IMG/VR virus record: IMGVR_UViG_3300042515_001753
Coordinates: 62,001-126,000 of that record
Reading direction: 5' to 3' (one strand)
Length of the DNA stretch: 64,000 nucleotides
A model generated the notes under the pieces. The model saw only the letters and a list, made by a program, of their open reading frames with translations, was not told the origin of the DNA and did not search any database. The position numbers were made by a program, and so were the translations under genes. Shown in pieces: positions 8,913-45,983 of the stretch; positions within the stretch are counted from its first letter, which is position 1, and every line of letters starts with the position of its first letter.

Positions 8913-9094
8913 TGCTGGTTTCGCAGTTTATCTATGTACTCAAGACTCGCACAGTGACCCCTATAACCAGGATAATATTCATTCACCATAGCAGGAATAC
9001 CCATAGCAGTAATCGCACTGTCACACTTCACCCAAACTTCTTTGGTTTCGTGATTTACAACGTGTTCTAATCTCAATTTGTTAGTCTTCTTCAT
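8900..9094 (-). CDS. hypothetical protein (about 64 aa)
   Basis: Likely start MKKTNKLRLEHVVNHETKEVWVKCDS; overlaps the end of the upstream gene. Confidence 0.6.
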   Translation of the reverse strand: MKKTNKLRLEHVVNHETKEVWVKCDSAITAMGIPAMVNEYYPGYRGHCASLEYIDKLRNQQVQS

Positions 9095-19312: not shown

Positions 19313-20683
19313 TCACATTAAATTGGCAACTTTGACTCTTCTGTAGTATACGTTAGAGTCGGTTGTGATAACACCAGGATTGGTGGTATCGGAACCCTTA
19401 GCGAATGGGTTAGCAACCATACCATAACGAGTCTTGAACCCGATTTTTGGTTGGAAGCTGTTCTCACCAACGGCACGAACCATTTGGAGAGGAACATAAG
19501 GGCAGTAGAAGAGACCTGCGTCATAAGGTGAAGAACCCTTATAACCGACAACGTAATACTGATTAGGAGCAACGTTTGCCGAATATGGGTCAATATAAAC
19601 CTTATACTTACCTTGAAGAACGCCAGCAAAGGTGTTGCCGGTGTCATCAACGTTCAGGTTAGCATTAAGTGCAGGGGTGTAATCGAGAACACCAGCCATT
19701 GCAAGTGCTGAAGCAACGTCAGCAGAGCAAACGATGGTGTTGCCCTTTCCTCTACGAGTTTGCTGTGCAATTGCGTTTGCATCGCGCTCGATTTGGAAGA
19801 TAAGACCCTTGAACTTCTCAACCGACCAACGACCGTTGGAGTCAACGTCGAGGTCAAAAGTACCAGCAGTAGCAGTATTTGCCTGAGCACCTGCCTTAGC
19901 ACTCTTGTAGATGGTTCTGATAACTTCGCGGTTGATTTCAGCAAGAATCTCAGTTGAGAGAATGTTTGCTAATTCCGCTTCAGCATTCAGACCGTGGATT
20001 GCCTTAAGGTCCTGAGCGAGCTCAAGTGAGTACTCAGCCTTCAGAGCGCGTGACTTAGCAGTAACGGTGATTTTCTCGATTGAGAAAGCCATCTCGTTGA
20101 ATGCCGAACCAGCACCACCAAGACCCTCAGAGTCTCCGGTATTCATCGCTGTGGAAACGTTATAGGTTCCTCCGTTATCGTTCAGAACGCTTGGGTTGGT
20201 TCCTGACTGAGCGGCAGTCGTACCAAAACCAACGTTACCCGATGGGAGAGTTCCTTCAGCGTTCTGAGCAGAGAATCTTGTATCTGCTTCGTTGTAGAAT
20301 GCTTCAGTTCCACTCTGGGTGGTGTAACGTGAACGCATCGCAAAGATAAGTCCAGTAGGACCGTTCATTGGTTGAACGCCACACAGATCATAAGCGATCA
20401 GGTTGGGCATTGAACGTCTGATTAGTGAAATCAGAACGGGGTCGAAACCTGCTACAGGGCTCGAAGCGTTTCCACCGAATCCACCGGACGAACCAGCAGT
20501 GTTTCCACTATTAGTTGGAGATTCGTAAAGAAACTCACGCTCTTCGCGGAGTTCTCTTTCTTGGTTTTCTAGCAGGATAGCGGTTACAGATCTACGATGT
20601 GCATCTTTGATCTGATCCATTCCGGAATAATCCAGGATTGGTGCCCACTTCTCCTGCAAATATTCTGCATTGAACATTTGCAT
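19313..20683 (-). CDS. gp23: major capsid protein
   Basis: LQEKWAPIL, DPVLISLIRRSMPNLIAYDLCGVQPMNGPTGLIFAMRS, SRALKAEYSLELAQDLKAIHGL, YCPYVPL. Confidence 0.99.
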   Translation of the reverse strand: MQMFNAEYLQEKWAPILDYSGMDQIKDAHRRSVTAILLENQERELREEREFLYESPTNSGNTAGSSGGFGGNASSPVAGFDPVLISLIRRSMPNLIAYDLCGVQPMNGPTGLIFAMRSRYTTQSGTEAFYNEADTRFSAQNAEGTLPSGNVGFGTTAAQSGTNPSVLNDNGGTYNVSTAMNTGDSEGLGGAGSAFNEMAFSIEKITVTAKSRALKAEYSLELAQDLKAIHGLNAEAELANILSTEILAEINREVIRTIYKSAKAGAQANTATAGTFDLDVDSNGRWSVEKFKGLIFQIERDANAIAQQTRRGKGNTIVCSADVASALAMAGVLDYTPALNANLNVDDTGNTFAGVLQGKYKVYIDPYSANVAPNQYYVVGYKGSSPYDAGLFYCPYVPLQMVRAVGENSFQPKIGFKTRYGMVANPFAKGSDTTNPGVITTDSNVYYRRVKVANLM

Positions 20684-21942: not shown

Positions 21943-22593
21943 TTAAAGATTTCCTAAGAAATCTTGGAACAATTGAACCTTATGCTCCTGAAGAGTTTTT
22001 TCATCTACAAGAGTATTAATTCTGCTTTTTGTTTGTTCTGCGAGTCTTTCACGAAGAATACCTCCTTCCCAAACCCACTCCTTACCTTCCATAATTCCCT
22101 GAACAAAAGCGTCGGGAGCAGAAGGATCGGCAACAATATCAGCAGCAGTTGCGAGCATAAAATCTTCACCAACAATTTTATGACCTTCATTAGTTAGTTT
22201 AAGTGAACCGACACCACGAGAAGAAACACCCAGGCAAACGCCTTCACCGATAAGAGATTTTGCAATCTTACCCATAGGAGTTTCAAGAAGTTGTGCCTTA
22301 CCAATAAAATTGCATCCTTTTTGTTCTAAGGAAACAATTTTATGAGAAACACGGTCAAGATTGACGGTAGGTCCATCGGGATGACCAAGTTCTCCAAGAG
22401 CACGACCCTTTGCAACGAAAGATTCATTATATCTCGCTACCTCACGGGCAAGAGTTTGCATAGGATACATTCTACCATTACGGTTACAAATGTCACCTTG
22501 AAGGAAAACTCCCTCAATATACATTTTCTTTTCAGCACCTTTACCTTCGGTGATAAACTTAACTTGTGAGACTTCTTCTGTGATGAGTTTCAT
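21943..22593 (-). CDS. gp21: prohead protease
   Basis: NRNGRMYP, ALGELGHP, GVSSRGVGS, ADIVADPSAPDAFV. Confidence 0.97.
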   Translation of the reverse strand: MKLITEEVSQVKFITEGKGAEKKMYIEGVFLQGDICNRNGRMYPMQTLAREVARYNESFVAKGRALGELGHPDGPTVNLDRVSHKIVSLEQKGCNFIGKAQLLETPMGKIAKSLIGEGVCLGVSSRGVGSLKLTNEGHKIVGEDFMLATAADIVADPSAPDAFVQGIMEGKEWVWEGGILRERLAEQTKSRINTLVDEKTLQEHKVQLFQDFLGNL

Positions 22594-29847: not shown

Positions 29848-31845
29848 TTACCTACTAACCTCTTCCCAGTCCATAGAACCAACTACAGTATCACCACCAC
29901 CATTAGAAGCAATAACAAGAGTAATTTCAAAAGGTGTTGATGTTAGTCCATTTCTTTCTAACTGAAACTTAAAGAGTGCTTCTCGGGGTATATCAATTTG
30001 AGTTGATCCTTGATTTGAAGCAGTAAAAAATCCACTCGCAAGTATTCTTCCACCAGTATGAGAAGTTCCAGTAATGTTATAATTCACAGCACTATCATCA
30101 CCAGCACTTACCCAATCTCCTCCCCCAGTAGTGCCAGATGCTCTAATCTGCCAATTATAGGCACCTGTATCGATTGGCATTGCCGAAAGTGCCGTGATAA
30201 TTGCAATCGCATCTAAATTATTTGGTGATGTTTTGAGTCTTATACTTACGATAGGATAAAATGTTCCAGCAGTTGTAAGAGTTCTTGGGGTGGTGATTGG
30301 TGTTCCTACTGCCTGCTGTAATCCATGAAGATTATAACCACCCTCCGAAATTACTGAAGAACAAATCTGTTTGAGATTACTTGTACTTGTGGTTATTCCA
30401 GTATTAGCAATCTCATATCTTACTGGAAGTGATGCTGTTGTGATATAAGTTGATTCAATTATGTTTGCGTGATGAAATGTATGGCAGTGAATGAATGCTC
30501 CGTCAATTACAAAACCTATTCTTACGGAACCAACACCCAACCATTCAATATCCATCCATAAGATTTGTGCTTTGGATGAATTTAATGTAAAACCAGAAGG
30601 ACCTGTACCGTCTAATTTATCAACATTCCAGTCTTCCTGTGCAACTCTTGTCGTTGTTCCAAGAGATAAACTTTTCTCTACAAAATATGCAGTATCCCCA
30701 TCAACCTCAAAATACATTCCATTATCAGCACCAAAATATCCAACTCTTTGACGAAGATTTGTTTTCTTGGGGTTCATTACAAATGTATTCAATACCAGCA
30801 AAGACTTTCCTGGTTGATATGCGAATACTTTTGTTGTTTCTCTAGTCACAGAACAACCAGCAGTAGTTCCAATTCCAATATTAATCAAACCCTGTGCGGT
30901 TACAAATCCAACTGTAGAACCAGTTCCTACAACTAAACTACTCCAGAGATTATTGTCCCTATATCTGTGAGAACTATCAAAAAGTGTGAGTGGGTTTGAT
31001 ACTCTTAAACGACCAAATGCATCACTTGAAGTTGATGGAAGTGTAACAGATGCTGATGATGTTGTAGAAATTGATACTGTTCCCGTAACTGGTAGGGGAT
31101 TACTAGAACTTACAGGAGCACTATTAAGGTTGAGTGATACTTGCCCTGTTGTTCCAATTCCTACTGTTCCTTGAACTGTAACAGTAGAACCAATACCTGA
31201 TACTGCGACTGTTGTTACTGGATTGGTTATGTAGAATGAAGTGTTAGAGATTGATACTGTATTAGCAATTGATACTGTTCCACCAACAGTTACTGTTGTT
31301 ACTGGATTTAAGACATAAAAAGAAGTATTGGATATAGAAACTGTATTTGCAATAGAAACAGTTCCACCAACAGTCACAGAAGTAACTGGATTTAGAACAT
31401 AAAAGGAAGTATTAGAGATTGATACAGTATTCAGTAATGTGGAAATGCCAACTGGAAGATATGAAAGATTTAGATTTTGTGCAGTTCCAATACCAATAGG
31501 CATATATGGAATACCTTCGTCTTCTAAAATACCACTTGAACCAACTTCTGTGATGTGCGTATGAACTGGGTCTTGTGGAGTACTTGTGACTGATACTGTT
31601 GTTCCTACATTTACATCACCAGTAATCGTAATATTGGAAGAACCTAATGATACTGGAAATGGATTGTTGAATGTGACTGGAGAACCACCTTGATTAATCG
31701 CAACAAATCCAGTTGTTCCAATACCTACTGGAAATCTATTTGTTTCACTTACAACTTCTCCATCTTTAGTCGCAATCATTGGGACTTCAAAAAGACTTCT
31801 TTCTTGATTCAGAAAGTCCTGCGTATTCTTATTAAACTGTGCCAT
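29848..31845 (-). CDS. hypothetical virion-type protein with internal 28-aa tandem repeats
   Basis: 665 aa, V/T/S/G-rich N-half; C-terminal domain begins SDAFGRLRVSNPLTLFDS. Confidence 0.75.
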   Translation of the reverse strand: MAQFNKNTQDFLNQERSLFEVPMIATKDGEVVSETNRFPVGIGTTGFVAINQGGSPVTFNNPFPVSLGSSNITITGDVNVGTTVSVTSTPQDPVHTHITEVGSSGILEDEGIPYMPIGIGTAQNLNLSYLPVGISTLLNTVSISNTSFYVLNPVTSVTVGGTVSIANTVSISNTSFYVLNPVTTVTVGGTVSIANTVSISNTSFYITNPVTTVAVSGIGSTVTVQGTVGIGTTGQVSLNLNSAPVSSSNPLPVTGTVSISTTSSASVTLPSTSSDAFGRLRVSNPLTLFDSSHRYRDNNLWSSLVVGTGSTVGFVTAQGLINIGIGTTAGCSVTRETTKVFAYQPGKSLLVLNTFVMNPKKTNLRQRVGYFGADNGMYFEVDGDTAYFVEKSLSLGTTTRVAQEDWNVDKLDGTGPSGFTLNSSKAQILWMDIEWLGVGSVRIGFVIDGAFIHCHTFHHANIIESTYITTASLPVRYEIANTGITTSTSNLKQICSSVISEGGYNLHGLQQAVGTPITTPRTLTTAGTFYPIVSIRLKTSPNNLDAIAIITALSAMPIDTGAYNWQIRASGTTGGGDWVSAGDDSAVNYNITGTSHTGGRILASGFFTASNQGSTQIDIPREALFKFQLERNGLTSTPFEITLVIASNGGGDTVVGSMDWEEVSR
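31205..31431. repeat. in-frame 84-nt tandem repeat, about 2.7 copies
   Basis: ACTGGA anchors at 31217, 31301 and 31385; unit NTVSISNTSFY(V/I)(L/T)NPVT(S/T)VTVGGTVSIA. Confidence 0.85.
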
Positions 31846-31847
31846 AA

Positions 31848-32162
31848 TTAATCAGTCCAAGTTAGTCTTTCTGGTTGATATCTTTGTGAGTTCTTAATTT
31901 TTAAAGAATTTGTTGTTTGGGGGTAAATGTTATGTACAATTGCTCCAGGATATTCTCCCTGAAGTTGCTCCGCAAGTTCATTTTTGTTCAACATCTTGCC
32001 TTCAACTTCTAATCTATACATTTTACCTTCCCAAACTATATCTGCGGTAAAAGACTCTCCAACGGGTTCTGATTGAGATTCTGAACCATTCATATAAAGA
32101 TTGCCGTTGAAATTTCCAGCAATATTAACACTTTCTGAAATAAACTGATTGAAGGATTTCAT
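31848..32162 (-). CDS. small protein with T4-type capsid targeting sequence
   Basis: Starts MKSFNQFISE|S. Confidence 0.7.
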   Translation of the reverse strand: MKSFNQFISESVNIAGNFNGNLYMNGSESQSEPVGESFTADIVWEGKMYRLEVEGKMLNKNELAEQLQGEYPGAIVHNIYPQTTNSLKIKNSQRYQPERLTWTD

Positions 32163-32163
32163 T

Positions 32164-33642
32164 TTAGTTACAGTTCCACTTTCTTAGGGATAATGTCTTT
32201 CTTGTTGGACGACCTTTTTCATCTTTCGTAGGTCCAGGCATTCCACTCATACGAGCACAGAATGATTTTCTGCGTTTTGCATCCTTAGAACCGGGTTTTA
32301 ATTTTGATGGTTTAGTAGTAACGGCAGTTTGCAATTTTGAACCTGGATTTTCTTTTCTATAAGATGCAACTCCTGCTGCGTTTAAACCACCTTCGGGATT
32401 TTTACCTTCCTTTCTTTGCCAAGCAGCGGATGCTTCATTCAGACCAAAATCCTCCCTCCAATTAGAATATTCATCATTAGATTCCTTAACCTTAACGCAG
32501 TTTGGATATCTTTTACCAAACATAGTCTTCATACCTTTTTTCTTATAACCTTTCCAACACGCCTCATCCATTGACCCTTGAACATTATGCTCACCACTAT
32601 CTAGGTAGTCGGCAGCGGCATCAATATAATCTGCTGCCTTTGTAATTTTTGATTGAACCCACGCCTCAATATTACCCTCACCATTCAGTTTGCCACGAAG
32701 TCTTTTGGCAGCAGAAATAATTGTAGAAAGTTCAGACCTTGCCATAGAATATTCGTGGTCTGGTTCCTTAGACTCATTAGCAGGATGTACCTGAGCAATA
32801 CTAAACTTCATCTGATTTGGAGATAATCTAGAAGGTAGTGAAAACATATCCCAGTACTTGGGACCATATCTGCATACATCTCTAGTCTCATCTTTCTCAC
32901 ATTTGGGGCAATATCTCATACCCATTTCTTCTGAAATAGAATCTTTTGGTGATAGATTTATTGATTCTGATTTATTTCCCCAATTAGCGGCACCAACCTT
33001 GCGACATTTTACAAGTGCTCCGGAAGCATATGCCGAAGGCCAGACAGAATATCTTGACTTTACTTTAGTATAACAAGCGTCTTTTGTGCCGCTTCCTTTA
33101 CCTTTAACATCTGATTCTTCGTTCATTTTCTTTTTGGGGGTATCTGTTGAAACATAAGTTGGTTTGGCAGCACCAGATTTTTCTGGTTGATTTGGGTCTG
33201 CGGCACTTTTTCTTCTTTGGGCAGATATTCTTTGAGATTTAGTCATACTTGCTCTTTTATCCGAAGAAACACACTTGGGTGTTTCATCTTCTTCACCTTC
33301 TTCACGGGCACAAGGTTCTCCGGAGATTACTTCAACCCAACCAGGCTTTCCTTTTTTACCTTTTGATTTTGATTTGCCAAACCAATCACGAAGACTCTCT
33401 TTCACATCCTTAAAGTTTTTATGCTCTTTTCTAGCATCAGACTCCATCTTTTTCAACTTAGTGTAATAATCTGGAAACTCATCAAGATGTTGGAGAGCAA
33501 TATCAGCAGCAAGATCTTTATCCTTAGTGTGCTCCTTTTCAATAGCAATACCCATCTTAAGTTGATTTCTTACAAAAGAAATATCCTGACGATGCTTTTT
33601 CGCAATACTTTCAACCGTCTGGTGGGGTTTTAATTTAGGCAC
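32164..33642 (-). CDS. modular basic late protein (DUF5661-, DUF5872- and DUF6321-like modules)
   Basis: IEKEHTKD..IALQHLDEFPDYYTKL; KDACYTKVKSRYSVWPSAYASGALVKCRK; CWKGY...PNCVK; AWQRKEGKNPEGGLN...RRKSFCARM. DUF numbers recalled, not searched. Confidence 0.7.
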   Translation of the reverse strand: MPKLKPHQTVESIAKKHRQDISFVRNQLKMGIAIEKEHTKDKDLAADIALQHLDEFPDYYTKLKKMESDARKEHKNFKDVKESLRDWFGKSKSKGKKGKPGWVEVISGEPCAREEGEEDETPKCVSSDKRASMTKSQRISAQRRKSAADPNQPEKSGAAKPTYVSTDTPKKKMNEESDVKGKGSGTKDACYTKVKSRYSVWPSAYASGALVKCRKVGAANWGNKSESINLSPKDSISEEMGMRYCPKCEKDETRDVCRYGPKYWDMFSLPSRLSPNQMKFSIAQVHPANESKEPDHEYSMARSELSTIISAAKRLRGKLNGEGNIEAWVQSKITKAADYIDAAADYLDSGEHNVQGSMDEACWKGYKKKGMKTMFGKRYPNCVKVKESNDEYSNWREDFGLNEASAAWQRKEGKNPEGGLNAAGVASYRKENPGSKLQTAVTTKPSKLKPGSKDAKRRKSFCARMSGMPGPTKDEKGRPTRKTLSLRKWNCN

Positions 33643-33654
33643 TTTAGGAAAACA

Positions 33655-34077
33655 CTATTCTTTATTATTTAGAAAACCTTGCTTCAGTATTTTTGAAAGT
33701 TCAGAAGTTGAACCAATAAAAACAGCATTATTAGTTACATTATTTGAAACTTTAGTATTATCTTCCTCAACATCTTTCAGTTTTTTCTGTAGGTCTATGA
33801 GTTTATCAGTCGTATCAGCAACACTCTTAATTAGTTGCCCCGCCACTTCATATGCTCTTGGACTTCCACCATCACCAGCAAGTTCCATAATTCCATTAAT
33901 TGCCTCCTGACCTTTTTCAATTAATGAATATAGATTTGCTCTTGTATATTCATAATCTTTTTTTATATCATTATTCTGTGTCGGAATAATATCAATTGGT
34001 GTGATAGACTTTTCTACCTCAACAATACTACTTTCAATATTCAGTGCTTTATCCAAATCTTCATAATTATTTTTCAT
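33655..34077 (-). CDS. gp16: terminase small subunit
   Basis: DYEYTRANLYSLIEKGQEAINGIMELA...PRAYEVAGQLIKSVAD..DKLIDLQKK...NNAVFIGSTSEL. Confidence 0.93.
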   Translation of the reverse strand: MKNNYEDLDKALNIESSIVEVEKSITPIDIIPTQNNDIKKDYEYTRANLYSLIEKGQEAINGIMELAGDGGSPRAYEVAGQLIKSVADTTDKLIDLQKKLKDVEEDNTKVSNNVTNNAVFIGSTSELSKILKQGFLNNKE

Positions 34078-34083
34078 AATATA

Positions 34084-34884
34084 TCAAATATCTCTTTGTT
34101 GAGTTGGACTATATGTTTTAGCATCGCCATATGTTTCAAAAGTTTCATTAAATCCAAAATCGTCATCCGGACCTGCGTCAATTGGGTCTGGAACAAGAGT
34201 ATATCTCATTTCTCTCTTGGCAGTTGTAGTATCAGTACTCGTATATAAATCAACTTGAACCTTACGAATGAGACCCTCTGTACTATCAGAAATTGGTCCG
34301 AACAGATAAGTTTTGGCAGTAAAATTTAAAGTATATATTAGGGTTCTCCGAGTTGAATAATCTCCTTCATAATCATCGGTAAAAGATACACTATCTAAAA
34401 CCACGGGAATATCTCTTTTTTCTCCGATAGAATCTACCAAATCTACTGTTAGATTGAATGATGGTTGAAAACTTGGAAGAATCTGTTCTACTATCTGCAG
34501 AGCATCATCTTGCAACTTCGTCATAATATTTAATTGAAACCCAATATTATATGGAACGGGCATATAAACTTTTTTTACAGTATCACCATTACCGCAAGTT
34601 TTGAATGTTTGAGTTACATTTGCCTTTCTTGTAGAATCATACTGAATAGAAGTCATTTCAAATGATATTCGGGGGAGAGTAATCTGAATTGCCTTATTCA
34701 ATTCCGATTGCTGCTCAATCCTGGCCAGAAACTTTTGCATAGGTCCATATCCAAGAGGAACCTTCATCTGACTGATTGCTACATCAGATGAATTTTTATG
34801 TTCTATGTAAATATCATTAAAAAGAGTTCCAAATGCAGTAACGGTCTTTCTAATAATTTGGTGATAAAAATAGGTCCCTAGCAT
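34084..34884 (-). CDS. gp15: tail sheath stabilizer / proximal tail protein
   Basis: YFYHQIIRKTVTAFGTLFN, KVPLGYGP, LPRISFEM, PVPYN, QIVEQILP.F.P. Confidence 0.95.
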   Translation of the reverse strand: MLGTYFYHQIIRKTVTAFGTLFNDIYIEHKNSSDVAISQMKVPLGYGPMQKFLARIEQQSELNKAIQITLPRISFEMTSIQYDSTRKANVTQTFKTCGNGDTVKKVYMPVPYNIGFQLNIMTKLQDDALQIVEQILPSFQPSFNLTVDLVDSIGEKRDIPVVLDSVSFTDDYEGDYSTRRTLIYTLNFTAKTYLFGPISDSTEGLIRKVQVDLYTSTDTTTAKREMRYTLVPDPIDAGPDDDFGFNETFETYGDAKTYSPTQQRDI

Positions 34885-38441: not shown

Positions 38442-38628
38442 TTAGCAATTCTCTCAATAAAGATTTAATTTCGCCAATATCTTGTTTAATCATATCCAAT
38501 TCTTTTTTTTGAGATTCTCTATTATTAACTATATTGAGATATTGATTATATGCGACAGAATCGCAATTAACAATAGCTCCGCTATTTTCATCCCTATAAA
38601 GATTTGTATGCCCCTTTACTCTAATCAT
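38428..38628 (-). CDS. conserved small hypothetical protein with C-terminal coiled coil
   Basis: MIRVKGHTNLYRDENSGAIVNCD...ELDMIKQDIGEIKSLLREL. Confidence 0.75.
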   Translation of the reverse strand: MIRVKGHTNLYRDENSGAIVNCDSVAYNQYLNIVNNRESQKKELDMIKQDIGEIKSLLRELLNGSE

Positions 38629-41600
38629 CTTACAGCAATCGTCCTAAGTTCTTTAATTCTTGGTGGATATGCCTGATTAGTTCCGGACATTACAATTTTA
38701 ATTACATATCCATTAAACAATCCAAGATTGTTTGCGGTAAATTCATATTCTTTGAATTGATTATCCAAACTAGAACTTACGAAAGAATCAGGTTTTCCGT
38801 TATTTAGAGAAGAATCAACTACCGAAAGTCCGGATGCCGTAGATGTAAGATTATCATAACCAGGAAATAGTTCAAATGATTGTTCAACTTCAGAAGAATC
38901 TGGTCTAGCCAAACTGTACAGAACTCTGAAATCAGCAGATTCGTGACGATATGCAGATAAAATAACTTTAAGAGAGGTTGCTGGTTGTACCAGATTTACT
39001 GCTCTTGAAACATACACTACTGCGTGTGGATCATCTAGTATGGAATTAGATCTTCCATCTAATGCATAATCGGAAACTGGACTATTTAGACGATTGGAAA
39101 TAAACTCGGTAAATGCAGTATCTAAAAATATTATGGGTGATATATTAGAATCTGTTGTACTTAGAGTTATTCCTGTTGTAAATGATTTATTTCTAGGTAA
39201 ATTATTAAGATATTCCGTTTCATTCTCTTTAGAACATACGAGTCTCACAGTTTTTAGTGTATTTAATGCATTCAACTGAACTGGTTCAAATCCATTATCC
39301 AAGAATGAAGTCTCATTTCCACTTACACTTGTTCCAGAAACAGATCTAATCACAGCGGAAACTGATGTCGAAGATCCTGGAGTAATGATGTCATATGTTG
39401 GCACCACGGAACTATAAAGAATATTTTCAGTTGCAAGAACTTTAGAACCTCCTAAGTTTGCTTCGGAGGTAAATTGCAGTTGGGGCATTCCTGCAGGAGA
39501 TCCATCACCACTTCTATCTACTCCATTTGCAGTTCTATCAATTTCCAAATAATAACCATCCAATCCGATATCTAAATCACTAATATCGTGAGTTGTATTA
39601 ATTCTGCGTAATGAAACTCCATTTAATTCATACTTATACATTAAACTATTGATACCATGATCAATTGAAATAGTAGAATCAATACCCCTGGTAATAGTAC
39701 CCAAGAATCCACTACCAATAGACTCATACTTAATTATTTCGTTTCCAATTTTTGCATATCCAGGATTAGATCCACTTACGGAAACTCCTTCAAAAGTTGC
39801 AAAGTTTGAAGTATCTCCAATTGCAACAGAAATTGTTGTTGATGTTGAGGTTAGAGATGAAGTAATTGTAACTGGTGCAGTACTAGATTCTGTATCATAA
39901 ACTCTAAGTTTATTTGTATTTCCATACATTCCGTGATCGAAATGTTCTACTCTTACATAATTTCCAGAATATTGATTAGTTGAAGGTGCAAAATTTCTAA
40001 TTACAGTACTTGCAAGAGAAACTATTGTATTGGAATTATCATAGTAATTTAATCCACCACCAACTGTAAAAGTATCCCCTTGAATATTTTCCAAGTATAG
40101 TGTATCCACTCCAGTAATTGATGAAATTGTAATTCTTGCATCACGTCCACGCACTGAAGTTCCAGTACCTACTGTAGAAGTTACAATACCAACAACATCT
40201 CCTACCGCATATCCATTTCCTAAATTTGCAGTTGTTATTCCAGTAATTGTTCCATTAGTGGCAGTAATATTCAACACAAGTCCAGAACCATTTCCAGTAA
40301 TATTATAAGTACTTACATTAGAATCCGTAACATAATTACTTCCACCCGTAGTTAATCCTACTGTTACCACTGCACTCCCTGTTCCACTTACATATCCATA
40401 AACATAATTCTTTGTTCCATCTACAATTTTTCTACCATTACTTAAATTTGAGATTACTGATGAATCTGTTGTTGTGGTAATTCCTAATGAACCAGTTCTG
40501 GGTAATGTTGTTAATGGATTATTTTCTAATGTCTGAACATATCCATTACTTTCATCCAATGTTGGATTATAGAAAAATGCTGTTCCTGGTTGATTTTCAA
40601 TAAATTGTGCCTTATAAAGTTTAAATTTAAGGTCCTGATATTGGTTTGCTGTCCATATGGATCCATTTTGGGATTTAAACAGACTTCCCATCGCAAACTG
40701 TTTTGAATAAGTGACGGCACTAACATCTGGAAGATCTTTTGTATTAACAGTTTTTTCTCCCATGACCGCAGTCCACATCTCATACTGATCACTATTTTCT
40801 GAAATAATTACAACAGCATATTCTCTCCCAGGTGGAAGATAAATTGGCTCATCAAAAGTAACTTTAGTGGCAATAGAAGCATCTGAAGAAACATTTACTT
40901 CACTTGGTCTTAATGTAACCGAATTTCCAATAACAATCCTTGTGGGTGTTCCCAGTTCTACAGTTCTTATTTCAACTTTTACCGTAGCATTTCCACTATC
41001 TTTTTTGGCAAAGAATAAATCAACGGCAGTTAAAAAGGCACCATTAGAATCATCAGTTGCCAATCCTTCTCTAGAAGAATCTGGAGCCTCTATATTTCCA
41101 CCAACAACAAAAGATTGTGCAAGAGGGTCTACAAATCTCTGGATAGTTGTTCTAGTATGAGTGTTTATCGTTGTTACTGAAGTTGTTGTATTTGTTGTAA
41201 GATTAGTGGATGTTTTTGTTGTTAGATTTTTAGTAGTTGCCGTAACAGTATTTTCCCACTGTTCAAGCGTACCATCAGAATTGAAGTTTGTTTCGGCAAC
41301 TGAAGTATCTGAACTTCCTGGAAGACCTGGATCGTTTGTTGAACTTGAACTCAACTTAAATGTTTTAGTTCCAGTAGAAATTCTTACAGTTGGAGTTGGG
41401 ATTGTATTTGGATTTCTTAAATAAAAGGTTCCAATCAAGTCTCCAAAATTATCAGAAATAAGTCTTAAATCACCAACAGTTGCCACAGCACCACTAGTCT
41501 GACCAACCAATTGCATACCCTTAAGTAAATATCCAGAATACTTTCCTTGAGCCTCTTCTGATAATGAAACAGTATCAATATTCAAAATTTTTGATGATTG

Positions 41601-44600
41601 ACTATATCCAGATGCTATGGATTCGGTTCTAATATATGGGTTAATTGTATATGTAGTGGATGGTGCATTATATGGACCATACTTATGATTTGGTGTTGCA
41701 ACTCTAAATGAAATTAAATTATTACCACCAAATGTTCCCACAACGGTTTCCCCAACCACAAATGCTTTAGATGGGTTTGATATTTCAATTAATTTTGGAA
41801 TAAAATCAACTCCACTATTTCCATCAAGAAACTGATAAAATTGTGTAGATGGTTTGATATTAGATGCAGAAAATTGAATATTTCTGGATCTCATAAATGA
41901 TTCCTTAGATGAAGATATTAATACATTTCTTATCGTTGTATCAGTATTGCTTGTGGTATCAAAATTTTCAGTTGTTGAAATAGTAGAAGTAGTATTAGTG
42001 GCAGTTGAGGACGTTACAGTATCAGTTGAGGACGTTACAGTTCTATTACCTCCTCCCCTTATAGTTGGCAAATTAACAGTTTTACTCGTTTGAGTATTAA
42101 TCGGTGTTAGAGTAACAAAAACATCACTTGTTAAATTGTTAGTAAGCGTTCTACTAGAATTTAATGTTATGTCAATATTTTTATCTGGAAGTTGAACTGT
42201 TCTCACCCAATTGTCAATTTCCGGACTTAACTTAATATCACCACTATAAACAATTACATTAAACGGATTTACATTTTCAACTGTTGTTGCAAATGCTTGT
42301 TCTATCCATCCAGTAGATTCATACTTTAAAGTTACTGCTTTTCCTGTTTTTACAACATTTGGATCTAGTAACTTAAAATTTTCCGAAAAATCTAAATTTT
42401 CATCAGTAACTGCAGATTCGGGTGCAATTTGTGATTTAAGTGAATTTCTACTAGTAATCGGTGTTATTTCATTTGTGGATGTATTAACTCTAATAGAAGA
42501 TAATCCCCTATTAATGAAGGAATAATTTTTAAAATCATCTACAAAAAATCCACTCTTAAATCTATTATTGCCATCAGCATCTTGAATTTGTAAAGTCTGC
42601 GTATTTACTTCAAGTAAAGACAATGAAGTAACTCTCTCTAAGTTTTCTACCCTATCTTCAATTAAACCAATATCTCTCATTGTATATCTTCTATTATCCT
42701 TTAATGTCACTACTGCATTTGCTGGATTATAAAGATATGGTGGTAATTTTATGGTTGCAATTTCCATTACCGCATCATTTTTATCTGGCGCCTTAGGGGT
42801 ATTTGAAGATATTCCTTTTTCTAGAATAAAGTTTTTATTCTTATCAAGATATAATTTATCAATTCTTGCTAAGTAATAATCGTAACCAAGTAGTGAACTT
42901 TCATTTGGTGATAAAATGCGTGTGGGTTCTAAAGTTCTTGATGAGAAATCAAATGGGGAAGAACTAGCTGAGGTAAAAATTGAAACTCTTGGTCTAAAAT
43001 CTAAAGTATCAGAAGATCTTACAGATCTTGGTCCAATGAAAGGAACATCATGTGTAAATCGGTCTTTGTCATAACTTAACACAGTAAATACATCGCCACT
43101 ATCATTAGAAGGAATCGAATAATAGTCAAATACAACTAAAAGTTGTTTTGATGGCTCTGTAGTGTTCTTATTCCTAACAATTTTAGAATAGTCGTAATAT
43201 TGATCTTTCTGCCCTTTATCAAGTCTATATGAATTGGTAATATCTTTATACTTTCCTGGAGTTATTGCTTCAATTTCTGTAGTTATATTTGATTCTTCGA
43301 ATGTAACAGTTTCCAAATCTTCAAATCTTTCTGAATTTAAATATACTACACTAAGAATATTGGAAGATGGACTTGAAACAACTCTTGCGATAGATTTACT
43401 ATTATTTCCTAAAATATTTTCACCAATAATAGCATTTGTCGATACATTAGCACTAGCGCCAAATTGTATCTGATCTAAGGTGGGTGCTGAAGAATCAAAT
43501 GACTCATAAACTGAAATAATTTTTACCACATCTGGGTAATTTAATGATATTTCCTCATCTTGAACTCTTAGTCCATAAAATTGATTGTATGTAAGACCAT
43601 CCCCAATTGAAGAACTAATACCAGTTCCTGATTGTGGATACTTCGATCTTGCTACAGTTAAAGTTTTACTTTTATTATATGTTTTTACTTTGCTTTGAAT
43701 TCCATTTTTAACTAATGTGACATTTACGACAACATTTGACTGAGAAGCGGACAATCCACTGATAGTTACCGTATTTCCACTCAAAACAAATTGATCCGAA
43801 GTTACAGATCCGATACTGCCATCATTATAGTGTACTGAGTATCTTTCTTCATCAAATGTTGTAAAAAATGCACTAGTAATACCAGCAACTGCTGACAAGT
43901 TAAATGTTAATACTCCATTAGAATCAGTAGTTTCTCCTGTTATTTGTTCAGAAATTGTTAGTAATGAATCTGAAAGATTTACTGAAGAAACATTAGGATC
44001 TGGTAACTGTGCATATAGGAATCCAGAATTCTCATTTCTTATTACTGGTGCTCCAATGAAAATATTATTATAAGTTCCGTTTGTAACTGAACCAGAATAT
44101 ATTCCAGAAACTCCAGGAGTTGTAGTAATAGTTAATGAAGTACCTTCAGGAGAAACTGCTGTTACTCTGTTAAATGACTCATCTCCTGTGGTAGTTTGAT
44201 ACCTAATAATTGAATTAACTTTTATGCCAGTGAAAAATTTTCCAGGACTTACTACAGTATTTCCTCCGCTGATAGTTACTTGAGTCACTCCATTTGGAAG
44301 TCTAAATCTTTCAAGAAAACAATCGGCGGTAAAATCTACTGGAAGACCAGATACTGCAGTTGTTTGTTTTACAGATTTAATATCTTCGGTTGAATATGCA
44401 GTTACGGTTTTGATAGTTCTTGGAAAATCAAGACCATTGATAATCAATTGTTCTCCAACTGAAAATGTTCCGGAAGTTTGTCTTAGGCTGATTGTATCAG
44501 ATGCTCCACCAGCAGAAACTGCATATCCACTAGCGCCGCTACTTTTTCCCCTTACAAATGATGTTGCTGGTAATTCTGTACTTGATATTGTGGAATTTAG

Positions 44601-45983
44601 AACAAGAGTTGTATAAGTTTGAATATCATAAAGATACAGATCCCAATTAGTGATATCATTACTATAGGCAGCATCAGTTAAACTAAAACTATATACTCGT
44701 GCATTACCAATTATGGATCCGGTAGAATTGAGTTGATTATATAAATCTATTGCGTATTTTGGTTTTGGTGTTCCAGATACATTATTTACTCCTATAATAT
44801 TTCCCATCTCAAAGGGAATATTTACATTTGGAATAGATTTAGTATCTCTCGGTTTATCAACATCAATAATAGTTGTTGAAATTTTTTCTATATCATATCC
44901 CCTTACATAAGCCTTTCCTGGGGATATTTTTAAACACATCAAGTCTTCTGATGGTGTGTTTTTTTGTTCAGTAATTTCTGTATTAAAAAACAAACCGTTA
45001 TTACCCAATCTATCATTTAAAGAATTATTTACGGACAGATTAAATGGCTCTACAGTATAATCACCAGATTCATCATAAGTTCTTTCTGCCATATAATCTT
45101 TAATTATATCATATTGACTTTTTTGCTCAATTATTTTAATTTTTCCATTTTCAACTCTCAAAAGTTCAACAAAATCAGTATCATTAATATCTGATATTAA
45201 TTTCTTTGTTAGAGTTAAATCAATCTTAAATCTATCTGCTCCAGGTGCTGCGTAGTTTGTAAATCCTTTAGAGGGGTCGTATAATGAACTGTCATCCCCA
45301 GCATTGAGAATTAATTCGTCAATTTTTAGACCAACCCTATATGAAGGTGTATTTGTATAATTATCTAAAATTATGGTTTGTTTAGATACATTAACAAAAT
45401 AACCTCTAATAAAATAAATTCCATCACCAATAGATGCTGAAGAACCTACAGATGTTGCGTTCAATAGTATTAATGATGCAAATGGAGTTCCTGCATTAAT
45501 AGTAGTGTTGCCATAAGTTATATTTTCTTCTGCAACTAATGATTCTCCATCTTCAAAAGGATTAAACTGAAAATTATTATCAGAATCCAAATATTTTACA
45601 TATATTGTTAAATCCTCTACATTTTCTCCATCAGGGAGCGCGACAAATTGAATTATTGCTGTTGTTCCTGATATTTGCCCTGTTATTTTTTTGCCAATAA
45701 AATTATTAATATAGATAGAAATATCAACCCCAAAATTAGTTGGATTAAGTTTTACGGAATTGAAATTTCCATCATAGGCAATATTTCCAGGAATAACTAC
45801 CGATCCCTCTTTAAATATATGACTTCCAAAAGACTTTACCTGATCCTGCAAAATAGATTGAAGAGTTGTTAGCTCTCTTGCCTGTACTGGATATCCTGGT
45901 TTAAACAAGACTTTATAAAAATTCTTTTCAGAATCAAAGTCATCATAATATGGATTGATGTTTAAATCTGTTTTCTGTGTCAT
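38625..45983 (-). CDS. large virion structural protein (DUF4815 / VrlC-like), 2452 aa
   Basis: NINPYYDDFD..KNFYKVLFKPGYPVQARELTTLQSILQ, YMAERTYDESGDY, RFKSGFFVDDF, DPLAQSF. Confidence 0.9.
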   Translation of the reverse strand: MTQKTDLNINPYYDDFDSEKNFYKVLFKPGYPVQARELTTLQSILQDQVKSFGSHIFKEGSVVIPGNIAYDGNFNSVKLNPTNFGVDISIYINNFIGKKITGQISGTTAIIQFVALPDGENVEDLTIYVKYLDSDNNFQFNPFEDGESLVAEENITYGNTTINAGTPFASLILLNATSVGSSASIGDGIYFIRGYFVNVSKQTIILDNYTNTPSYRVGLKIDELILNAGDDSSLYDPSKGFTNYAAPGADRFKIDLTLTKKLISDINDTDFVELLRVENGKIKIIEQKSQYDIIKDYMAERTYDESGDYTVEPFNLSVNNSLNDRLGNNGLFFNTEITEQKNTPSEDLMCLKISPGKAYVRGYDIEKISTTIIDVDKPRDTKSIPNVNIPFEMGNIIGVNNVSGTPKPKYAIDLYNQLNSTGSIIGNARVYSFSLTDAAYSNDITNWDLYLYDIQTYTTLVLNSTISSTELPATSFVRGKSSGASGYAVSAGGASDTISLRQTSGTFSVGEQLIINGLDFPRTIKTVTAYSTEDIKSVKQTTAVSGLPVDFTADCFLERFRLPNGVTQVTISGGNTVVSPGKFFTGIKVNSIIRYQTTTGDESFNRVTAVSPEGTSLTITTTPGVSGIYSGSVTNGTYNNIFIGAPVIRNENSGFLYAQLPDPNVSSVNLSDSLLTISEQITGETTDSNGVLTFNLSAVAGITSAFFTTFDEERYSVHYNDGSIGSVTSDQFVLSGNTVTISGLSASQSNVVVNVTLVKNGIQSKVKTYNKSKTLTVARSKYPQSGTGISSSIGDGLTYNQFYGLRVQDEEISLNYPDVVKIISVYESFDSSAPTLDQIQFGASANVSTNAIIGENILGNNSKSIARVVSSPSSNILSVVYLNSERFEDLETVTFEESNITTEIEAITPGKYKDITNSYRLDKGQKDQYYDYSKIVRNKNTTEPSKQLLVVFDYYSIPSNDSGDVFTVLSYDKDRFTHDVPFIGPRSVRSSDTLDFRPRVSIFTSASSSPFDFSSRTLEPTRILSPNESSLLGYDYYLARIDKLYLDKNKNFILEKGISSNTPKAPDKNDAVMEIATIKLPPYLYNPANAVVTLKDNRRYTMRDIGLIEDRVENLERVTSLSLLEVNTQTLQIQDADGNNRFKSGFFVDDFKNYSFINRGLSSIRVNTSTNEITPITSRNSLKSQIAPESAVTDENLDFSENFKLLDPNVVKTGKAVTLKYESTGWIEQAFATTVENVNPFNVIVYSGDIKLSPEIDNWVRTVQLPDKNIDITLNSSRTLTNNLTSDVFVTLTPINTQTSKTVNLPTIRGGGNRTVTSSTDTVTSSTATNTTSTISTTENFDTTSNTDTTIRNVLISSSKESFMRSRNIQFSASNIKPSTQFYQFLDGNSGVDFIPKLIEISNPSKAFVVGETVVGTFGGNNLISFRVATPNHKYGPYNAPSTTYTINPYIRTESIASGYSQSSKILNIDTVSLSEEAQGKYSGYLLKGMQLVGQTSGAVATVGDLRLISDNFGDLIGTFYLRNPNTIPTPTVRISTGTKTFKLSSSSTNDPGLPGSSDTSVAETNFNSDGTLEQWENTVTATTKNLTTKTSTNLTTNTTTSVTTINTHTRTTIQRFVDPLAQSFVVGGNIEAPDSSREGLATDDSNGAFLTAVDLFFAKKDSGNATVKVEIRTVELGTPTRIVIGNSVTLRPSEVNVSSDASIATKVTFDEPIYLPPGREYAVVIISENSDQYEMWTAVMGEKTVNTKDLPDVSAVTYSKQFAMGSLFKSQNGSIWTANQYQDLKFKLYKAQFIENQPGTAFFYNPTLDESNGYVQTLENNPLTTLPRTGSLGITTTTDSSVISNLSNGRKIVDGTKNYVYGYVSGTGSAVVTVGLTTGGSNYVTDSNVSTYNITGNGSGLVLNITATNGTITGITTANLGNGYAVGDVVGIVTSTVGTGTSVRGRDARITISSITGVDTLYLENIQGDTFTVGGGLNYYDNSNTIVSLASTVIRNFAPSTNQYSGNYVRVEHFDHGMYGNTNKLRVYDTESSTAPVTITSSLTSTSTTISVAIGDTSNFATFEGVSVSGSNPGYAKIGNEIIKYESIGSGFLGTITRGIDSTISIDHGINSLMYKYELNGVSLRRINTTHDISDLDIGLDGYYLEIDRTANGVDRSGDGSPAGMPQLQFTSEANLGGSKVLATENILYSSVVPTYDIITPGSSTSVSAVIRSVSGTSVSGNETSFLDNGFEPVQLNALNTLKTVRLVCSKENETEYLNNLPRNKSFTTGITLSTTDSNISPIIFLDTAFTEFISNRLNSPVSDYALDGRSNSILDDPHAVVYVSRAVNLVQPATSLKVILSAYRHESADFRVLYSLARPDSSEVEQSFELFPGYDNLTSTASGLSVVDSSLNNGKPDSFVSSSLDNQFKEYEFTANNLGLFNGYVIKIVMSGTNQAYPPRIKELRTIAVR

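Follow-up and report, generated by a model that had tools for sequence, protein, structure and literature searches.

Modular anatomy and junction sites of a cyanophage T4-GC119 protein, a putative precursor polyprotein of capsid-internal mini-proteins

The gp16-gp17 locus and the modules of the 492-aa protein

The window, i.e., the whole stretch of 64,000 nucleotides analysed here, contains gp15, gp16, a 492-aa ORF, a 104-aa ORF, a 665-aa ORF, gp17 and gp18 in this order. The 492-aa ORF starts 12 nt past the terS stop codon with GTG, where homologues align ATG or Met, and its placement between gp16 and gp17 is matched in S-SRM01 and S-B43. This region has been called a hot-spot (PMC3037559). 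The encoded protein belongs to T4-GC119, a cyanophage cluster of Sullivan et al. 2010 annotated as 'virion structural protein'. Membership rests on matches to phrog_727 (E 6.8e-86), DUF5661 (E 3.7e-16, residues 12-68) and DUF6321 (E 2.4e-22, residues 413-489). Seven further PHROGs match separate stretches of the ORF, and S-B43 has a homologue labelled 'T4-like GC0119'. The gene family occurs in 15 of 16 reference genomes, has no assigned function and ranges in length from 276 to 2985 nt. The window also encodes gp23 and a gp21 prohead protease, the latter aligning to the T4 gp21 structure 5JBL (E 1.1e-25).

Table 1 Positions of the features within the window (arrows mark predicted cut sites or boundaries)
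Feature	Position	Strand	Characteristics
gp23 major capsid protein	19313..20683	-	predicted propeptide cut LYE54↓S55; E54 encoded at 20522-20524
gp21 prohead protease (Peptidase_S77)	21943..22593	-	PF03420 E 1.9e-35; proposed processing enzyme
Adjacent 104-aa ORF	31848..32162	-	start MKSFNQFISE↓S, T4 CTS-like; leader conserved in 32 loci
Whole 492-aa ORF (P0001)	32164..33642	-	492 codons, GTG start; T4-GC119 member
Module M7, residues 404-492	32167..32433	-	DUF6321, pI 10.7, C462 and C491
Acidic spacer, residues 388-403	32434..32481	-	SNDEYSNWREDFGLNE403↓A
Module M6, residues 361-387	32482..32562	-	ACWKGY...PNCVKVKE387↓S, 27-aa beta-hairpin, one Cys pair, pI 10.0
Module M5, residues 291-360	32563..32772	-	acidic helical hairpin DHEYSMARSEL...EAWVQSKITKAADYID, pI 4.9, end SMDE360↓A
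Module M4, residues 239-290	32773..32928	-	RYCPKC...C257...KYWDMFS, small beta/Cys3 unit, end HPANE290↓S
Module M3, residues 176-238	32929..33117	-	KDACY...WPSAYASGALVKCRKVGAANWG, pI 9.4, weakly DUF5872-like
Module M2, residues 83-175	33118..33396	-	LRDWF...GWV...C111...PKC124...RRK, pI 9.6, end KMNE175↓E
Module M1, residues 1-82	33397..33642	-	DUF5661 helical bundle, pI 9.1, end DVKE82↓S
gp16 small terminase (terS)	33655..34077	-	upstream limit of the variable stretch between gp16 and gp17 that contains the 492-aa ORF

The AlphaFold2 model of the 492-aa protein (pTM 0.25) consists of seven or eight small folded modules connected by disordered linkers, without any predicted packing between modules. 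Segments with pLDDT <50 (residues 76-94, 168-187, 224-239, 279-299, 353-360, 385-397 and 399-403) cover every junction. The initial annotation had described the ORF as a string of unrelated short modules. Pfam, PHROG, AlphaFold2 and module swaps among homologues all uphold this, and the modular anatomy is established.

M1 is modelled with pLDDT 90-96 across residues 11-60, and M2 matches phrog_12753/3477, with E175 invariant in 67 sequences. M3, which matches phrog_38880, takes in the spacer 227-238 and ends ISE238↓E. Its likeness to DUF5872 remains a lead only: searched alone against Pfam (E <= 10) the module reached E 0.025, below the cut-off, and a feature-based search of the ESM Atlas again returned DUF5872 clusters (score 0.89). 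In M4 (pLDDT 80-86), C245, C248 and E252 are invariant. M5 matches phrog_32745 and is modelled as two helices (296-318 and 327-348), the stretch A327-Y346 being nearly invariant; M6 is modelled as two strands (366-374 and 377-384). Conserved Cys residues fall into the groups C111/C124, C190/C213, C245/C248/C257, C362/C382 and C462/C491. Other folds were not recovered. Foldseek with the whole model found no match in the PDB at E <= 0.001, the BFVD fold search returned the same DUF families only, and Pfam searches with single modules (E <= 10) yielded, beyond DUF5872, only a chance match to SbsC_C. A resemblance to the alpha-defensin hairpin, resting on a 23-residue Foldseek match, was rejected as not significant (E 7.8, probability 0.57).

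A side observation concerns M3 of two homologues (P0097 and L044), in which intein-like elements are inserted at A206^S207. A Pfam search of the insert in P0097 gave no match, and the call as an intein is inferred from sequence motifs alone (Cys1, TPNH and terminal ...GN↓S).

Hydrophobic-x-Glu sites at the module junctions

The cleavage rule of T4 gp21 is L/I-X-E (PMC9026906). The initial annotation had recognised LYE↓S at the expected end of the gp23 propeptide, and this held: L-x-E occupies the position in 79 of 80 relatives, the remaining row being shifted by one residue, and P2 is free (Y, S, T, M, G, N, F or H). It had also listed eight junction strings in the 492-aa protein, all of which were found (VKE82↓S, MNE175↓ES, KSE226↓S, ISE238↓E, ANE290↓S, MDE360↓A, VKE387↓S and LNE403↓A). 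Six of them are hydrophobic-x-Glu sites. The other two are weaker: KSE226 has K at P3, and its Glu is invariant but belongs to the module end NWGxKSE, while ANE290 has A at P3, where other homologues carry F-P-E or M-P-E instead.

The protein contains only seven [LIVMF]-x-Glu sites, and six of these (E82, E175, E238, E360, E387 and E403) reside in linkers, at junctions on that list. The seventh, LDE55, is situated inside a helix with pLDDT >90. The total is ordinary (7 versus 6.1 +/- 2.2 in shuffles). Placement is non-random, with six of seven sites in the linkers, which make up 24% of the residues (binomial p = 0.001). A hydrophobic residue occupies P3 for 6 of the 16 linker Glu as opposed to 1 of the 22 module Glu (Fisher p = 0.015). 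Of the six exposed sites, two have I or L at P3 (ISE238, LNE403), whereas the other four carry V or M in place of the L or I that T4 prefers.

Conservation was assessed in 70 diverse homologues. An [LIVMF]xE motif resides no more than 8 residues upstream of the module start in 260 of 362 cases (72%), compared with 14.5% for random positions. Note that the homologues are related and that junction counts are not independent events. The motif precedes M3 in 58 of 58 cases, M6 (CWxGY) in 54 of 61, M7 in 60 of 62 and M1 following a further module, M0, in 11 of 13; upstream of M4, the spacer-carrying forms have V/I/L-x-E. Whatever module precedes, Glu is fixed at P1, P3 is L, I, V, M or F, and P2 is free. 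Double sites with 6-aa spacers occur (e.g., KKMKE↓ELELQE↓A), and two junctions of locus L167 read K-N-E. Counting against the polyprotein reading, the motif also turns up inside conserved modules, as LDE in DUF5661 and, in some homologues, as VTE or LNE in DUF6321.

Since a column scan of the E-INS-i alignment proved too noisy in the linkers, the anchor-based test described above was combined with one based on breakpoints. Breakpoints in BLAST homology lie no more than 4 residues to either side of a hydrophobic-x-Glu site 2.4 times as often as expected, and when each of the 20 possible P1 residues was tried, enrichment above 2-fold was confined to E and N, the latter a rare residue (3% of positions). 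At the disordered junctions, modules have been added, lost or exchanged among homologues. M1 is absent from 409-aa homologues, which begin MGSLRKWF at residue 83, and inserts of 30-150 aa take the place of the spacer 388-403. Both the placement and the conservation of the sites are established. The suggestion that modules can be shuffled at protease sites was borne out as far as position goes, as homologues shuffle or insert modules, or split them into separate genes, at these putative cut sites. Lack of conservation of the junction Glu had been named as grounds for refuting a polyprotein; Glu is kept in most of the diverse homologues examined, and the reading survives.

Of the phages examined, the four whose modules are fused (the window phage, S-SRM01, S-B43 and the siphovirus S-SKS1) all encode an S77 protease, which is absent from the three that carry single-module genes (CRP-7, HTVC168P and P-GSP1). 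The presence of the protease is plain, while the association rests on seven genomes only. The fused-module protein of S-SKS1 has the junctions GMSE↓, TILE↓, LVDE↓G and QIDE↓L. This siphovirus was considered as a counter-example and dismissed; as it also encodes an S77 protease, it is not evidence against the polyprotein reading.

Free-standing modules, capsid targeting leaders and virion evidence

Modules of the 492-aa protein also occur as genes of their own. In CRP-7, a DUF6321-like protein, M3 (gp64) and M2 (gp63) are encoded by three adjacent tiny genes, and DUF6321 (M7) stands alone in the T7-like phages HTVC168P and P-GSP1, the copy of HTVC168P being 60% identical to M7. M3 is carried by 1,792 small proteins of 31-100 aa. 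Single modules share 50-60% identity between Synechococcus and SAR11 phages and can still be recognised in a Roseobacter phage. Seven loci encode M0 separately, as a gene of 51 aa; five of the seven genes end ...P[VI]E directly before a stop codon that overlaps the polyprotein start (TAATG), and this split boundary coincides with F-x-E↓M of some fused forms.

Overlaps of this kind allow for a different explanation, in which the junction Glu codons are fossil or working ribosome-binding sites or starts and the modules are produced from internal translation starts. In its favour, Met often precedes M4 (EEMGM-RYCPKC, ETQMI-RYCPKC) and the split versions have overlapping TAATG junctions. However, most junctions lack an in-frame start codon, and the P3 rule acts at the level of protein, not of nucleotides. 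We regard this explanation as very improbable. Fossil ribosome-binding sites as the cause of the junction Glu were rejected: the codons are mixed GAA/GAG without GGAG or GAGG context, and most genes of the phage lack Shine-Dalgarno sequences.

In T4, the capsid targeting sequence (CTS) reads MKTYQEFIAE (10.1101/2021.01.19.427310), and the roles of its residues 4, 7, 8 and 10 have been given (PMC9026906). With Asp at position 10, T4 still targets the protein to the capsid, while processing is blocked. The leader of the 104-aa ORF resembles this sequence, which makes its product a candidate packaged internal protein. Altogether, three ORFs in the window genome have CTS-like starts, and the CTS-like leaders use I-S-E and M-V-E. 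One of these ORFs encodes a protein of the cytidylyltransferase family known from S-SM1 virions; a related NMNAT-like enzyme has been detected in those of S-SCSM1. The 492-aa ORF itself begins MPKLKPHQTVES and has no CTS-like N-terminus, and the fused forms with M0 likewise lack a CTS, which leaves their route of entry into the prohead unexplained. In relatives, M0, M6, M3 and DUF6321 are placed directly behind a T4-type CTS. Locus L167 encodes both MKTFNQFQAE↓-M6-M3 and MKTFNQFQAE↓-M6-Cys module-DUF6321, and CTS-M0 genes are present in seven loci. Module genes led by a CTS are therefore shown to exist. Many stand-alone M3 proteins begin with a leader of roughly 10 aa, the last three residues being hydrophobic-x-E.

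Evidence for virion association comes from relatives. A T4-GC119 member was identified in CsCl-purified S-SM1 virions with a modest 13 peptide counts, the Syn9 homologue was not detected in the virion proteome, and a relative in S-SCSM1 is annotated 'Virion protein'. The supplements of PMC3037559 and PMC9602691, both tryptic shotgun proteomes, provide counts or nothing and no peptide termini.

Proposed processing in the prohead and competing readings

Unrelated modules with a conserved site of the prohead-protease type at their junctions imply that the protein is probably cut inside the phage head. On balance, we lean towards the 492-aa ORF encoding a precursor polyprotein of capsid-internal mini-proteins; cleavage, location in the head interior and function are inferred. 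The precursor would be made late in infection and taken into the prohead core, where the activated gp21-type protease would cut after Glu in the exposed hydrophobic-x-Glu linkers, i.e., at E82, E175, E238, E360, E387 and E403, with E226 and E290 as possible extra sites. About seven pieces of 2-14 kDa would result, and these would remain with the packaged DNA. Five of the seven predicted fragments are strongly basic (pI 9.1-10.7, 3-10 kDa). Four of these five have one conserved Cys pair each and the DUF5661 piece has no Cys; the acidic ones are fragment 239-360 (pI 5.4), which has three Cys, and the spacer 388-403 (pI 4.0). The initial annotation had called several modules Lys/Arg-rich or endowed with Cys pairs. 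This held, although the predicted products are not all basic. Its overall interpretation, a polyprotein of basic head peptides cleaved by gp21, is supported in silico: the parts testable by sequence comparison came out as predicted, and we rate it as rather more credible than not.

In principle, the same anatomy could belong to an uncleaved or merely trimmed 'beads-on-a-string' virion protein whose modules act together, and this remains possible. Hydrophobic-x-Glu would then reflect the structure or fusion history of acidic, flexible linkers that balance basic modules. Several observations are in line with this: the linkers are rich in Glu (16 of 38 Glu in 24% of the length), the total number of motifs equals the shuffle expectation, the ORF lacks a CTS, and shotgun proteomics detected the family as one gene product without reporting any processing. 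On the other hand, this reading does not explain why linkers that are hydrophilic elsewhere have a hydrophobic residue exactly at P3, which is found at nearly 100% of the M3, M6 and M7 junctions, whereas LIVMF make up 15% of the linker residues. Furthermore, other phages use the modules as separate genes, no packing between modules is predicted (pTM 0.25), and the boundaries of split genes match the motif.

It is also conceivable, but in our view unlikely, that the polyprotein is processed and its products do not reside in the mature head, being either scaffold-like aids that are expelled or effectors acting in the cell; in the effector variant, cleavage would take place outside the mature head, through gp21 or a different protease. 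T4 gp22, gp67 and gp68 are indeed cut multiple times and for the most part lost from the head (PMC9026906), M5 with its acidic helices resembles a scaffold, and the gene lies in a hypervariable region of the kind in which host-interaction genes are typically found. However, family peptides were recovered from CsCl-purified virions and the S-SCSM1 relative carries its virion annotation. Moreover, the modules are basic like the internal proteins that T4 retains and unlike the acidic scaffold debris that it expels, and their sequences are highly conserved across phages of unrelated hosts.

Returning to the capsid-internal polyprotein, each linker site is self-contained, so modules could be added, lost, swapped or split without harm, and we propose that the length range of the family arises because modules recombine freely at these sites. 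What the modules do remains a guess, as was the original proposal of effectors or DNA-binding peptides. Possibly, they neutralise the charge of packed DNA or organise it, or they are delivered with it. The similarity of modules across Synechococcus, SAR11 and Roseobacter phages favours a universal partner over a host-specific target.

The closest parallels are the T4 internal proteins, small basic proteins carried in the T4-type head, released from precursors by the prohead protease after hydrophobic-x-Glu (location and release being inferred in our case) and encoded by gene sets that vary strongly between related phages. A T4-like CTS (MK[ST]F..F..E) is shared by the adjacent ORF and module genes of relatives. 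T4 internal proteins, however, are encoded by single genes and cut once beside a leader of 10-19 aa, while here a single leaderless ORF holds about seven unrelated cargo modules separated by predicted cut sites, and P3 in the cyanophage family includes V, M and F. No likeness of the 492-aa protein to IPI, IPII or IPIII was found by Pfam, PHROG or PDB fold search. Multiple X-x-Glu cuts in the prohead, again inferred here, are known for T4 gp22/gp67 and for head proteins of phiKZ, 201phi2-1 and SPN3US, which are processed by a gp21-family protease and leave some fragments in the head. These are single-lineage scaffold or inner-body proteins, often acidic, and not independent modules with free-standing gene versions. 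Adenovirus pVII and pX (mu) release basic DNA-associated peptides in the capsid through a packaged viral protease. This serves as an analogy of mechanism only, as virus, protease and proteins are unrelated and each precursor yields one main product. Members of T4-GC119 (Pfam DUF5661, DUF6321 and DUF5872; PHROGs 727 and 3477) have identical domains and the same gp16-gp17 place and are annotated only as structural or hypothetical proteins. In the literature searched, we found no description of the modular junction motif of T4-GC119, of a polyprotein reading or of a cyanophage CTS, and no papers on DUF6321 or DUF5661.

A bolder reading, for which the balance of evidence falls a little short, is that a combinatorial cassette with the protease site as a universal 'splice point' exists in cyanophages as well as in one or more siphoviruses that encode a gp21-type protease. 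Under the same joint assessment, and thus with no greater assurance, the mini-proteins of the cassette would be cationic for the most part, and the majority would have a conserved Cys pair. We are equally hesitant about loading, where entry into the prohead would occur as a polyprotein or behind T4-type leaders and the protease would free the pieces. As to scope, the hosts of the cassette would be T4-type cyanophages, marine and freshwater, while protease-less podoviruses of SAR11, Prochlorococcus and Roseobacter would use free-standing genes; this, too, we would not yet favour. That all this amounts to a widespread, unrecognised class of DNA-companion or co-injected phage proteins is held with the same reserve.

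The ocean's most abundant viruses include T4-like cyanophages, and the polyprotein reading would give an unassigned family a testable biochemistry. If correct, it would account for the extreme length variation of the family and its home in a hypervariable region, and it would extend the T4 system of CTS and gp21 to cyanophages. Small basic genes that neighbour capsid and terminase genes in pelagiphages, roseophages and cyanopodoviruses would then share a single function. CTS-like leaders together with the cleavage sites might also allow foreign proteins to be packaged in the heads of cyanophages, as already practised with T4.

Modular architecture of the ORF product and its locus

The initial annotation had described the 492-aa ORF product as a string of unrelated short modules, and this part of the claim held, as family matches fall on separate stretches and are complemented by an AlphaFold2 model. 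DUF5661 matches the N-terminus and DUF6321 the C-terminus, distinct PHROGs match the stretches between them, and the model, built with 67 homologues (pTM 0.25), consists of small well-predicted units connected by stretches with pLDDT below 50 (residues 76-94, 168-187, 224-239, 279-299, 353-360, 385-397 and 399-403). Module M1 is absent from close relatives, which start with MGSLRKWF at residue 83. Other homologues carry 30-150 extra residues between M6 and M7, a swapped C-terminal module or an additional N-terminal module, M0, with the pattern WSxKYKKSIDCxNPKGFSQRAHC. In two homologues, protein P0097 and the one at locus L044, similar inserts interrupt M3 at one shared point (WPSAYA^SGALVKC). 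Their shared motifs are Cys1, a TxxH block (TPNH or TDNH) and, at the end, ITGN/S (a slash marks a proposed or, here, splice-like junction). A Pfam search of the insert gave no match, such that its identification as an intein rests on motifs only; if correct, their presence singles out M3 as a unit under strong conservation.

The source of the window is a T4-like cyanomyophage (146-kb record). Among isolates, S-SRM01, a Synechococcus phage from fresh water, is nearest, with an ORF homologue 64% identical at the protein level. Every gene around the ORF lies on the minus strand, in the order gp13/14, gp15, gp16 terS, ORF, 104-aa ORF, 665-aa virion protein, gp17 terL, gp18, gp19, gp20, DUF7243, gp21, gp22 and gp23. 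A homologous-protein search run with the full-length ORF showed that it is conserved among thousands of metagenomic proteins. Two further observations concern the neighborhood: the N-terminal half of the 665-aa protein contains about three tandem copies of a unit of about 28 aa (NTVSISNTSFYVLNPVT.VTVGGTVSIA), and two giant ORFs upstream of the neck genes likely encode giant cyanophage structural proteins.

Coordinates of genes, modules and predicted pieces (nucleotide positions refer to the window unless a locus is named; L numbers, fetched loci; aa, residues of the respective protein; mass, pI and Cys apply to predicted pieces)
Feature	Position	Strand	Mass (kDa)	pI	Cys	Remarks
gp15	34084-34884	-
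gp16 terS	33655-34077	-
Polyprotein ORF	32164-33642	-				492 codons, GTG start, 12 nt past terS stop
104-aa ORF	31848-32162	-				phrog_1742, unknown function; CTS-like start MKSFNQFISE
665-aa virion structural protein	29848-31845	-				phrog_1645
gp21	21943-22593	-				clear Peptidase_S77
gp23	19313-20683	-
186-aa ORF	9081-9641	-				ATG at 9641; CTS-like start MKTFQEFMVE
439-aa cytidylyltransferase/NMNAT-like	G000:C1:92163-93482	+				outside window, locus L166; CTS-like start MKSFFQFISE/A
2452-aa giant ORF	38625-45983	-
3857-aa giant ORF	47558-59131	-
M1	aa 1-82		9.7	9.1	0	DUF5661
M2	aa 83-175		10.2	9.6	2	LRDWF...C...PKC
M3	aa 176-238		6.7	9.4	2	KDACY...WPSAYASGALVKCRK
M4	aa 239-290					RYCPKC...C
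M5	aa 291-360					acidic helical hairpin
M4-M5, one predicted piece	aa 239-360		13.8	5.4	3
M6	aa 361-387		3.2	10.0	2	CWxGY...NCV beta-hairpin
Spacer	aa 388-403		2.0	4.0	0	acidic
M7	aa 404-492		9.7	10.7	2	DUF6321
P0097 insert	aa 193-459					267 aa
L044 insert	L044:2995-5064
HTVC168P basic mini-genes	L003:5727-6228
P-GSP1 basic mini-genes	L084:3468-4216
Leader-DPBB_1 ORFs	L088:4553-4969; L099:1891-2292					MKTFKQFVIE/A

A hydrophobic-x-Glu motif at the module junctions

While the total of [LIVMF]-x-E motifs in the ORF product is ordinary (7 vs 6.1 +/- 2.2 in shuffles), their placement is not: six of the seven lie within linkers, which make up 24% of residues (binomial p = 0.001). Expressed per glutamate, a hydrophobic residue at P3, the third position before the proposed cut, precedes 6/16 linker Glu vs 1/22 module Glu (Fisher p = 0.015). 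The sole non-linker site, LDE55, is part of a confidently modelled helix (pLDDT above 90).

The analysis was extended to 70 non-redundant homologues, drawn from 80 IMG/VR loci and word-search hits, with identities down to about 45%. For 72% of module starts, vs 14.5% of all positions, the motif lies no more than eight residues upstream (M3, 58/58; M6, 54/61; M7, 60/62; M1 following M0, 11/13), regardless of which module precedes. P1 is Glu throughout, P3 is L, I, V, M or F, and P2 takes many values; several junctions carry double sites six residues apart, e.g., KKMKE/ELELQE/A. BLAST homology between differently built homologues ends within four residues of the motif in 40% of cases vs 16.8% of positions, and a P1 scan of these ends over all 20 residues found only E (with rare N) enriched, about 2.4-fold. 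It should be noted that the homologues are related and that junction counts are not independent events. Nevertheless, the variety at P2 and P3 shows that the junction pattern is maintained during evolution and not merely inherited. All eight junction strings listed in the initial annotation, as well as LYE/S in gp23, are present, and the junction Glu sites proved conserved among homologues, as that annotation required; its K-S-E and A-N-E strings are the weaker candidate cut sites. An origin of the junction glutamates as fossil ribosome-binding sites was rejected at the nucleotide level.

T4 gp21 cleaves after L/I-X-E (PMC9026906). The gp21 of the window phage aligns to the T4 gp21 structure 5JBL (E 1e-25), and 79 of 80 related cyanomyophages have L-x-E/(A/S/T/Q/G)P at the T4 propeptide-cut position of gp23, the remaining row being shifted by one residue, with Y, S, T, M, G, N, F or H at P2. 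By sequence comparison, the ORF junctions bear a hydrophobic-x-Glu signature like that of the recognized gp21 site of this clade, with a wider choice of residues at P3.

Stand-alone modules and capsid-targeting leaders

Sequence comparison shows that the modules can stand on their own. Upstream of its terL, Roseobacter phage CRP-7 has a row of three very short genes, one each for a DUF6321-like protein (84 aa), M3 (47 aa) and M2 (80 aa). The T7-like pelagiphage HTVC168P has a stand-alone DUF6321 (81 aa) and two other very basic mini-genes between its scaffold and capsid genes, and DUF6321 is also a stand-alone gene in cyanopodovirus P-GSP1. A search with this one domain alone found M3 in 1,792 database proteins between 31 and 100 aa long. 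M0 forms a separate 51-aa gene in seven cyanomyophage loci, in five of which it ends in P[VI]E before the stop codon and overlaps the polyprotein start (TAATG); where M0 is fused in some other phages, F-x-E/M occurs at the point matching the split-gene boundary. The boundaries of naturally separate genes thus coincide with, or lie close to, proposed cut sites. Tiny, very basic genes adjoining DUF6321 are common to HTVC168P and P-GSP1 (e.g., MAKRGLYANIHAKR..., 49-50 aa), in the latter just upstream of the small terminase, and may share a functional class with the modules.

In a small sample of seven genomes, fused multi-module genes occurred only where an S77 protease is encoded (the window phage, S-SRM01, S-B43 and siphovirus S-SKS1, with junctions GMSE/, TILE/, LVDE/G and QIDE/L in the last), and the three phages with single-module genes have no S77 protease.

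The 104-aa ORF adjoining the polyprotein gene starts with MKSFNQFISE/S, a leader that 32 related loci keep as MKSF[QKNR][QDE]F[ILM][STQ]E and that closely resembles the T4 capsid targeting sequence (CTS) MKTYQEFIAE. In the latter, residues 4 and 7 serve targeting and 8 and 10 processing (PMC9026906); the cyanophage leader has F4, F7, I/L/M8 and E10, making the 104-aa protein a candidate packaged internal protein. A record-wide scan revealed three CTS-like starts. The 186-aa ORF, with a sub-threshold Pfam match to S-adenosylmethionine lyase (27.5 bits vs a cut-off of 28), could possibly be a packaged anti-restriction enzyme. The cytidylyltransferase/NMNAT-like enzyme belongs to a family, T4-GC190, found with 25 peptide counts in S-SM1 virions (Sullivan et al. 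2010), and an NMNAT-like enzyme was detected in S-SCSM1 virions (S-SCSM1 study). In this case the leader thus points to a protein already known to be packaged, and we infer that it would account for the presence of T4-GC190 in S-SM1 virions.

Leaders also precede modules. At locus L167, one gene reads MKTFNQFQAE/CW...NCVPKNE/AAGEKDACY..., i.e., leader-M6-M3, and a further one joins MKTFNQFQAE/ to M6, a Cys module and DUF6321; MKTFKQFQEE/ precedes M0 in seven loci, and among M3 proteins encoded alone, many begin with roughly ten leader residues, the last of them hydrophobic-x-E (e.g., MKEEIELTE/V, MKKEEVQVTE/G). Across all loci fetched, 47 distinct CTS-like starts were found among 11,083 Met-started ORF candidates, where a rough residue-frequency estimate predicts less than one by chance. 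Such a leader is also joined to a DPBB_1 lytic transglycosylase domain (E 2.3e-12, from the L088 copy alone) in an ORF near gp23 of related cyanomyophages, whose product is a candidate packaged muralytic enzyme.

Proposed processing in the prohead

An uncleaved, beads-on-a-string virion protein remains possible as the main rival explanation, but it leaves the P3 rule, the split-gene boundaries and the leader-module genes unexplained. We lean, with moderate confidence, towards a precursor polyprotein cut by gp21 in the prohead, whereby both cleavage and location in the head interior are inferred. Against this reading, cleavage data are lacking, the ORF itself has no CTS leader, four of the six proposed sites have V or M at P3, and some motif copies fall inside modules. 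The ORF family, cluster T4-GC119, is present in 15/16 genomes with gene lengths of 276-2985 nt. Its detection in S-SM1 virions, with 13 peptide counts, is evidence for a place in the particle, yet this count is modest and the cluster was not detected in the Syn9 virion (Sullivan et al. 2010), which speaks against the polyprotein reading. The S-SCSM1 homologue is annotated as 'Virion protein', which was not confirmed within the shotgun virion proteome of that phage (45 proteins; S-SCSM1 study).

According to the polyprotein model, the precursor would enter the prohead and gp21 would cut after E82, E175, E238, E360, E387 and E403, with further cuts possible at E226 and E290. Acidic, helical M5, nearly invariant from A327 to Y346, might bind the scaffold core and so bring the leaderless precursor inside; this is speculation without binding data. 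Each of four of the five basic predicted pieces has one conserved Cys pair, which may form a disulfide once the particle has left the cell. Single modules are 50-60% identical between Synechococcus and SAR11 phages, and for the M3 of a Roseobacter phage the figure is 47%. Because the modules are so alike across these phages, our guess is that the inferred function of the pieces involves a universal partner, such as packed DNA or the ejection path, rather than host-specific anti-defence.

The proposed mechanism follows that of T4 internal and core proteins, which relies on gp21, L/I-X-E and a targeting leader, with L or I at P3 in only two of the six sites proposed here. It differs in that the ORF would join shuffled mini-proteins, each viable by itself, into one polyprotein, and its product, a member of the T4-GC119 and DUF5661/DUF6321 families, has neither homology to the T4 internal-protein families nor a leader. 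The literature searched contained no paper on DUF5661/DUF6321, a polyprotein reading or cyanophage targeting leaders; within this scope the arrangement is new, while the underlying T4-type mechanism is known.

The first 16 residues of the window gp21, MKLITE/EVSQVKFITE/G, contain two hydrophobic-x-E sites. For a comparable site in T4 gp21, LIE-9, self-cleavage has been considered as a possibility.
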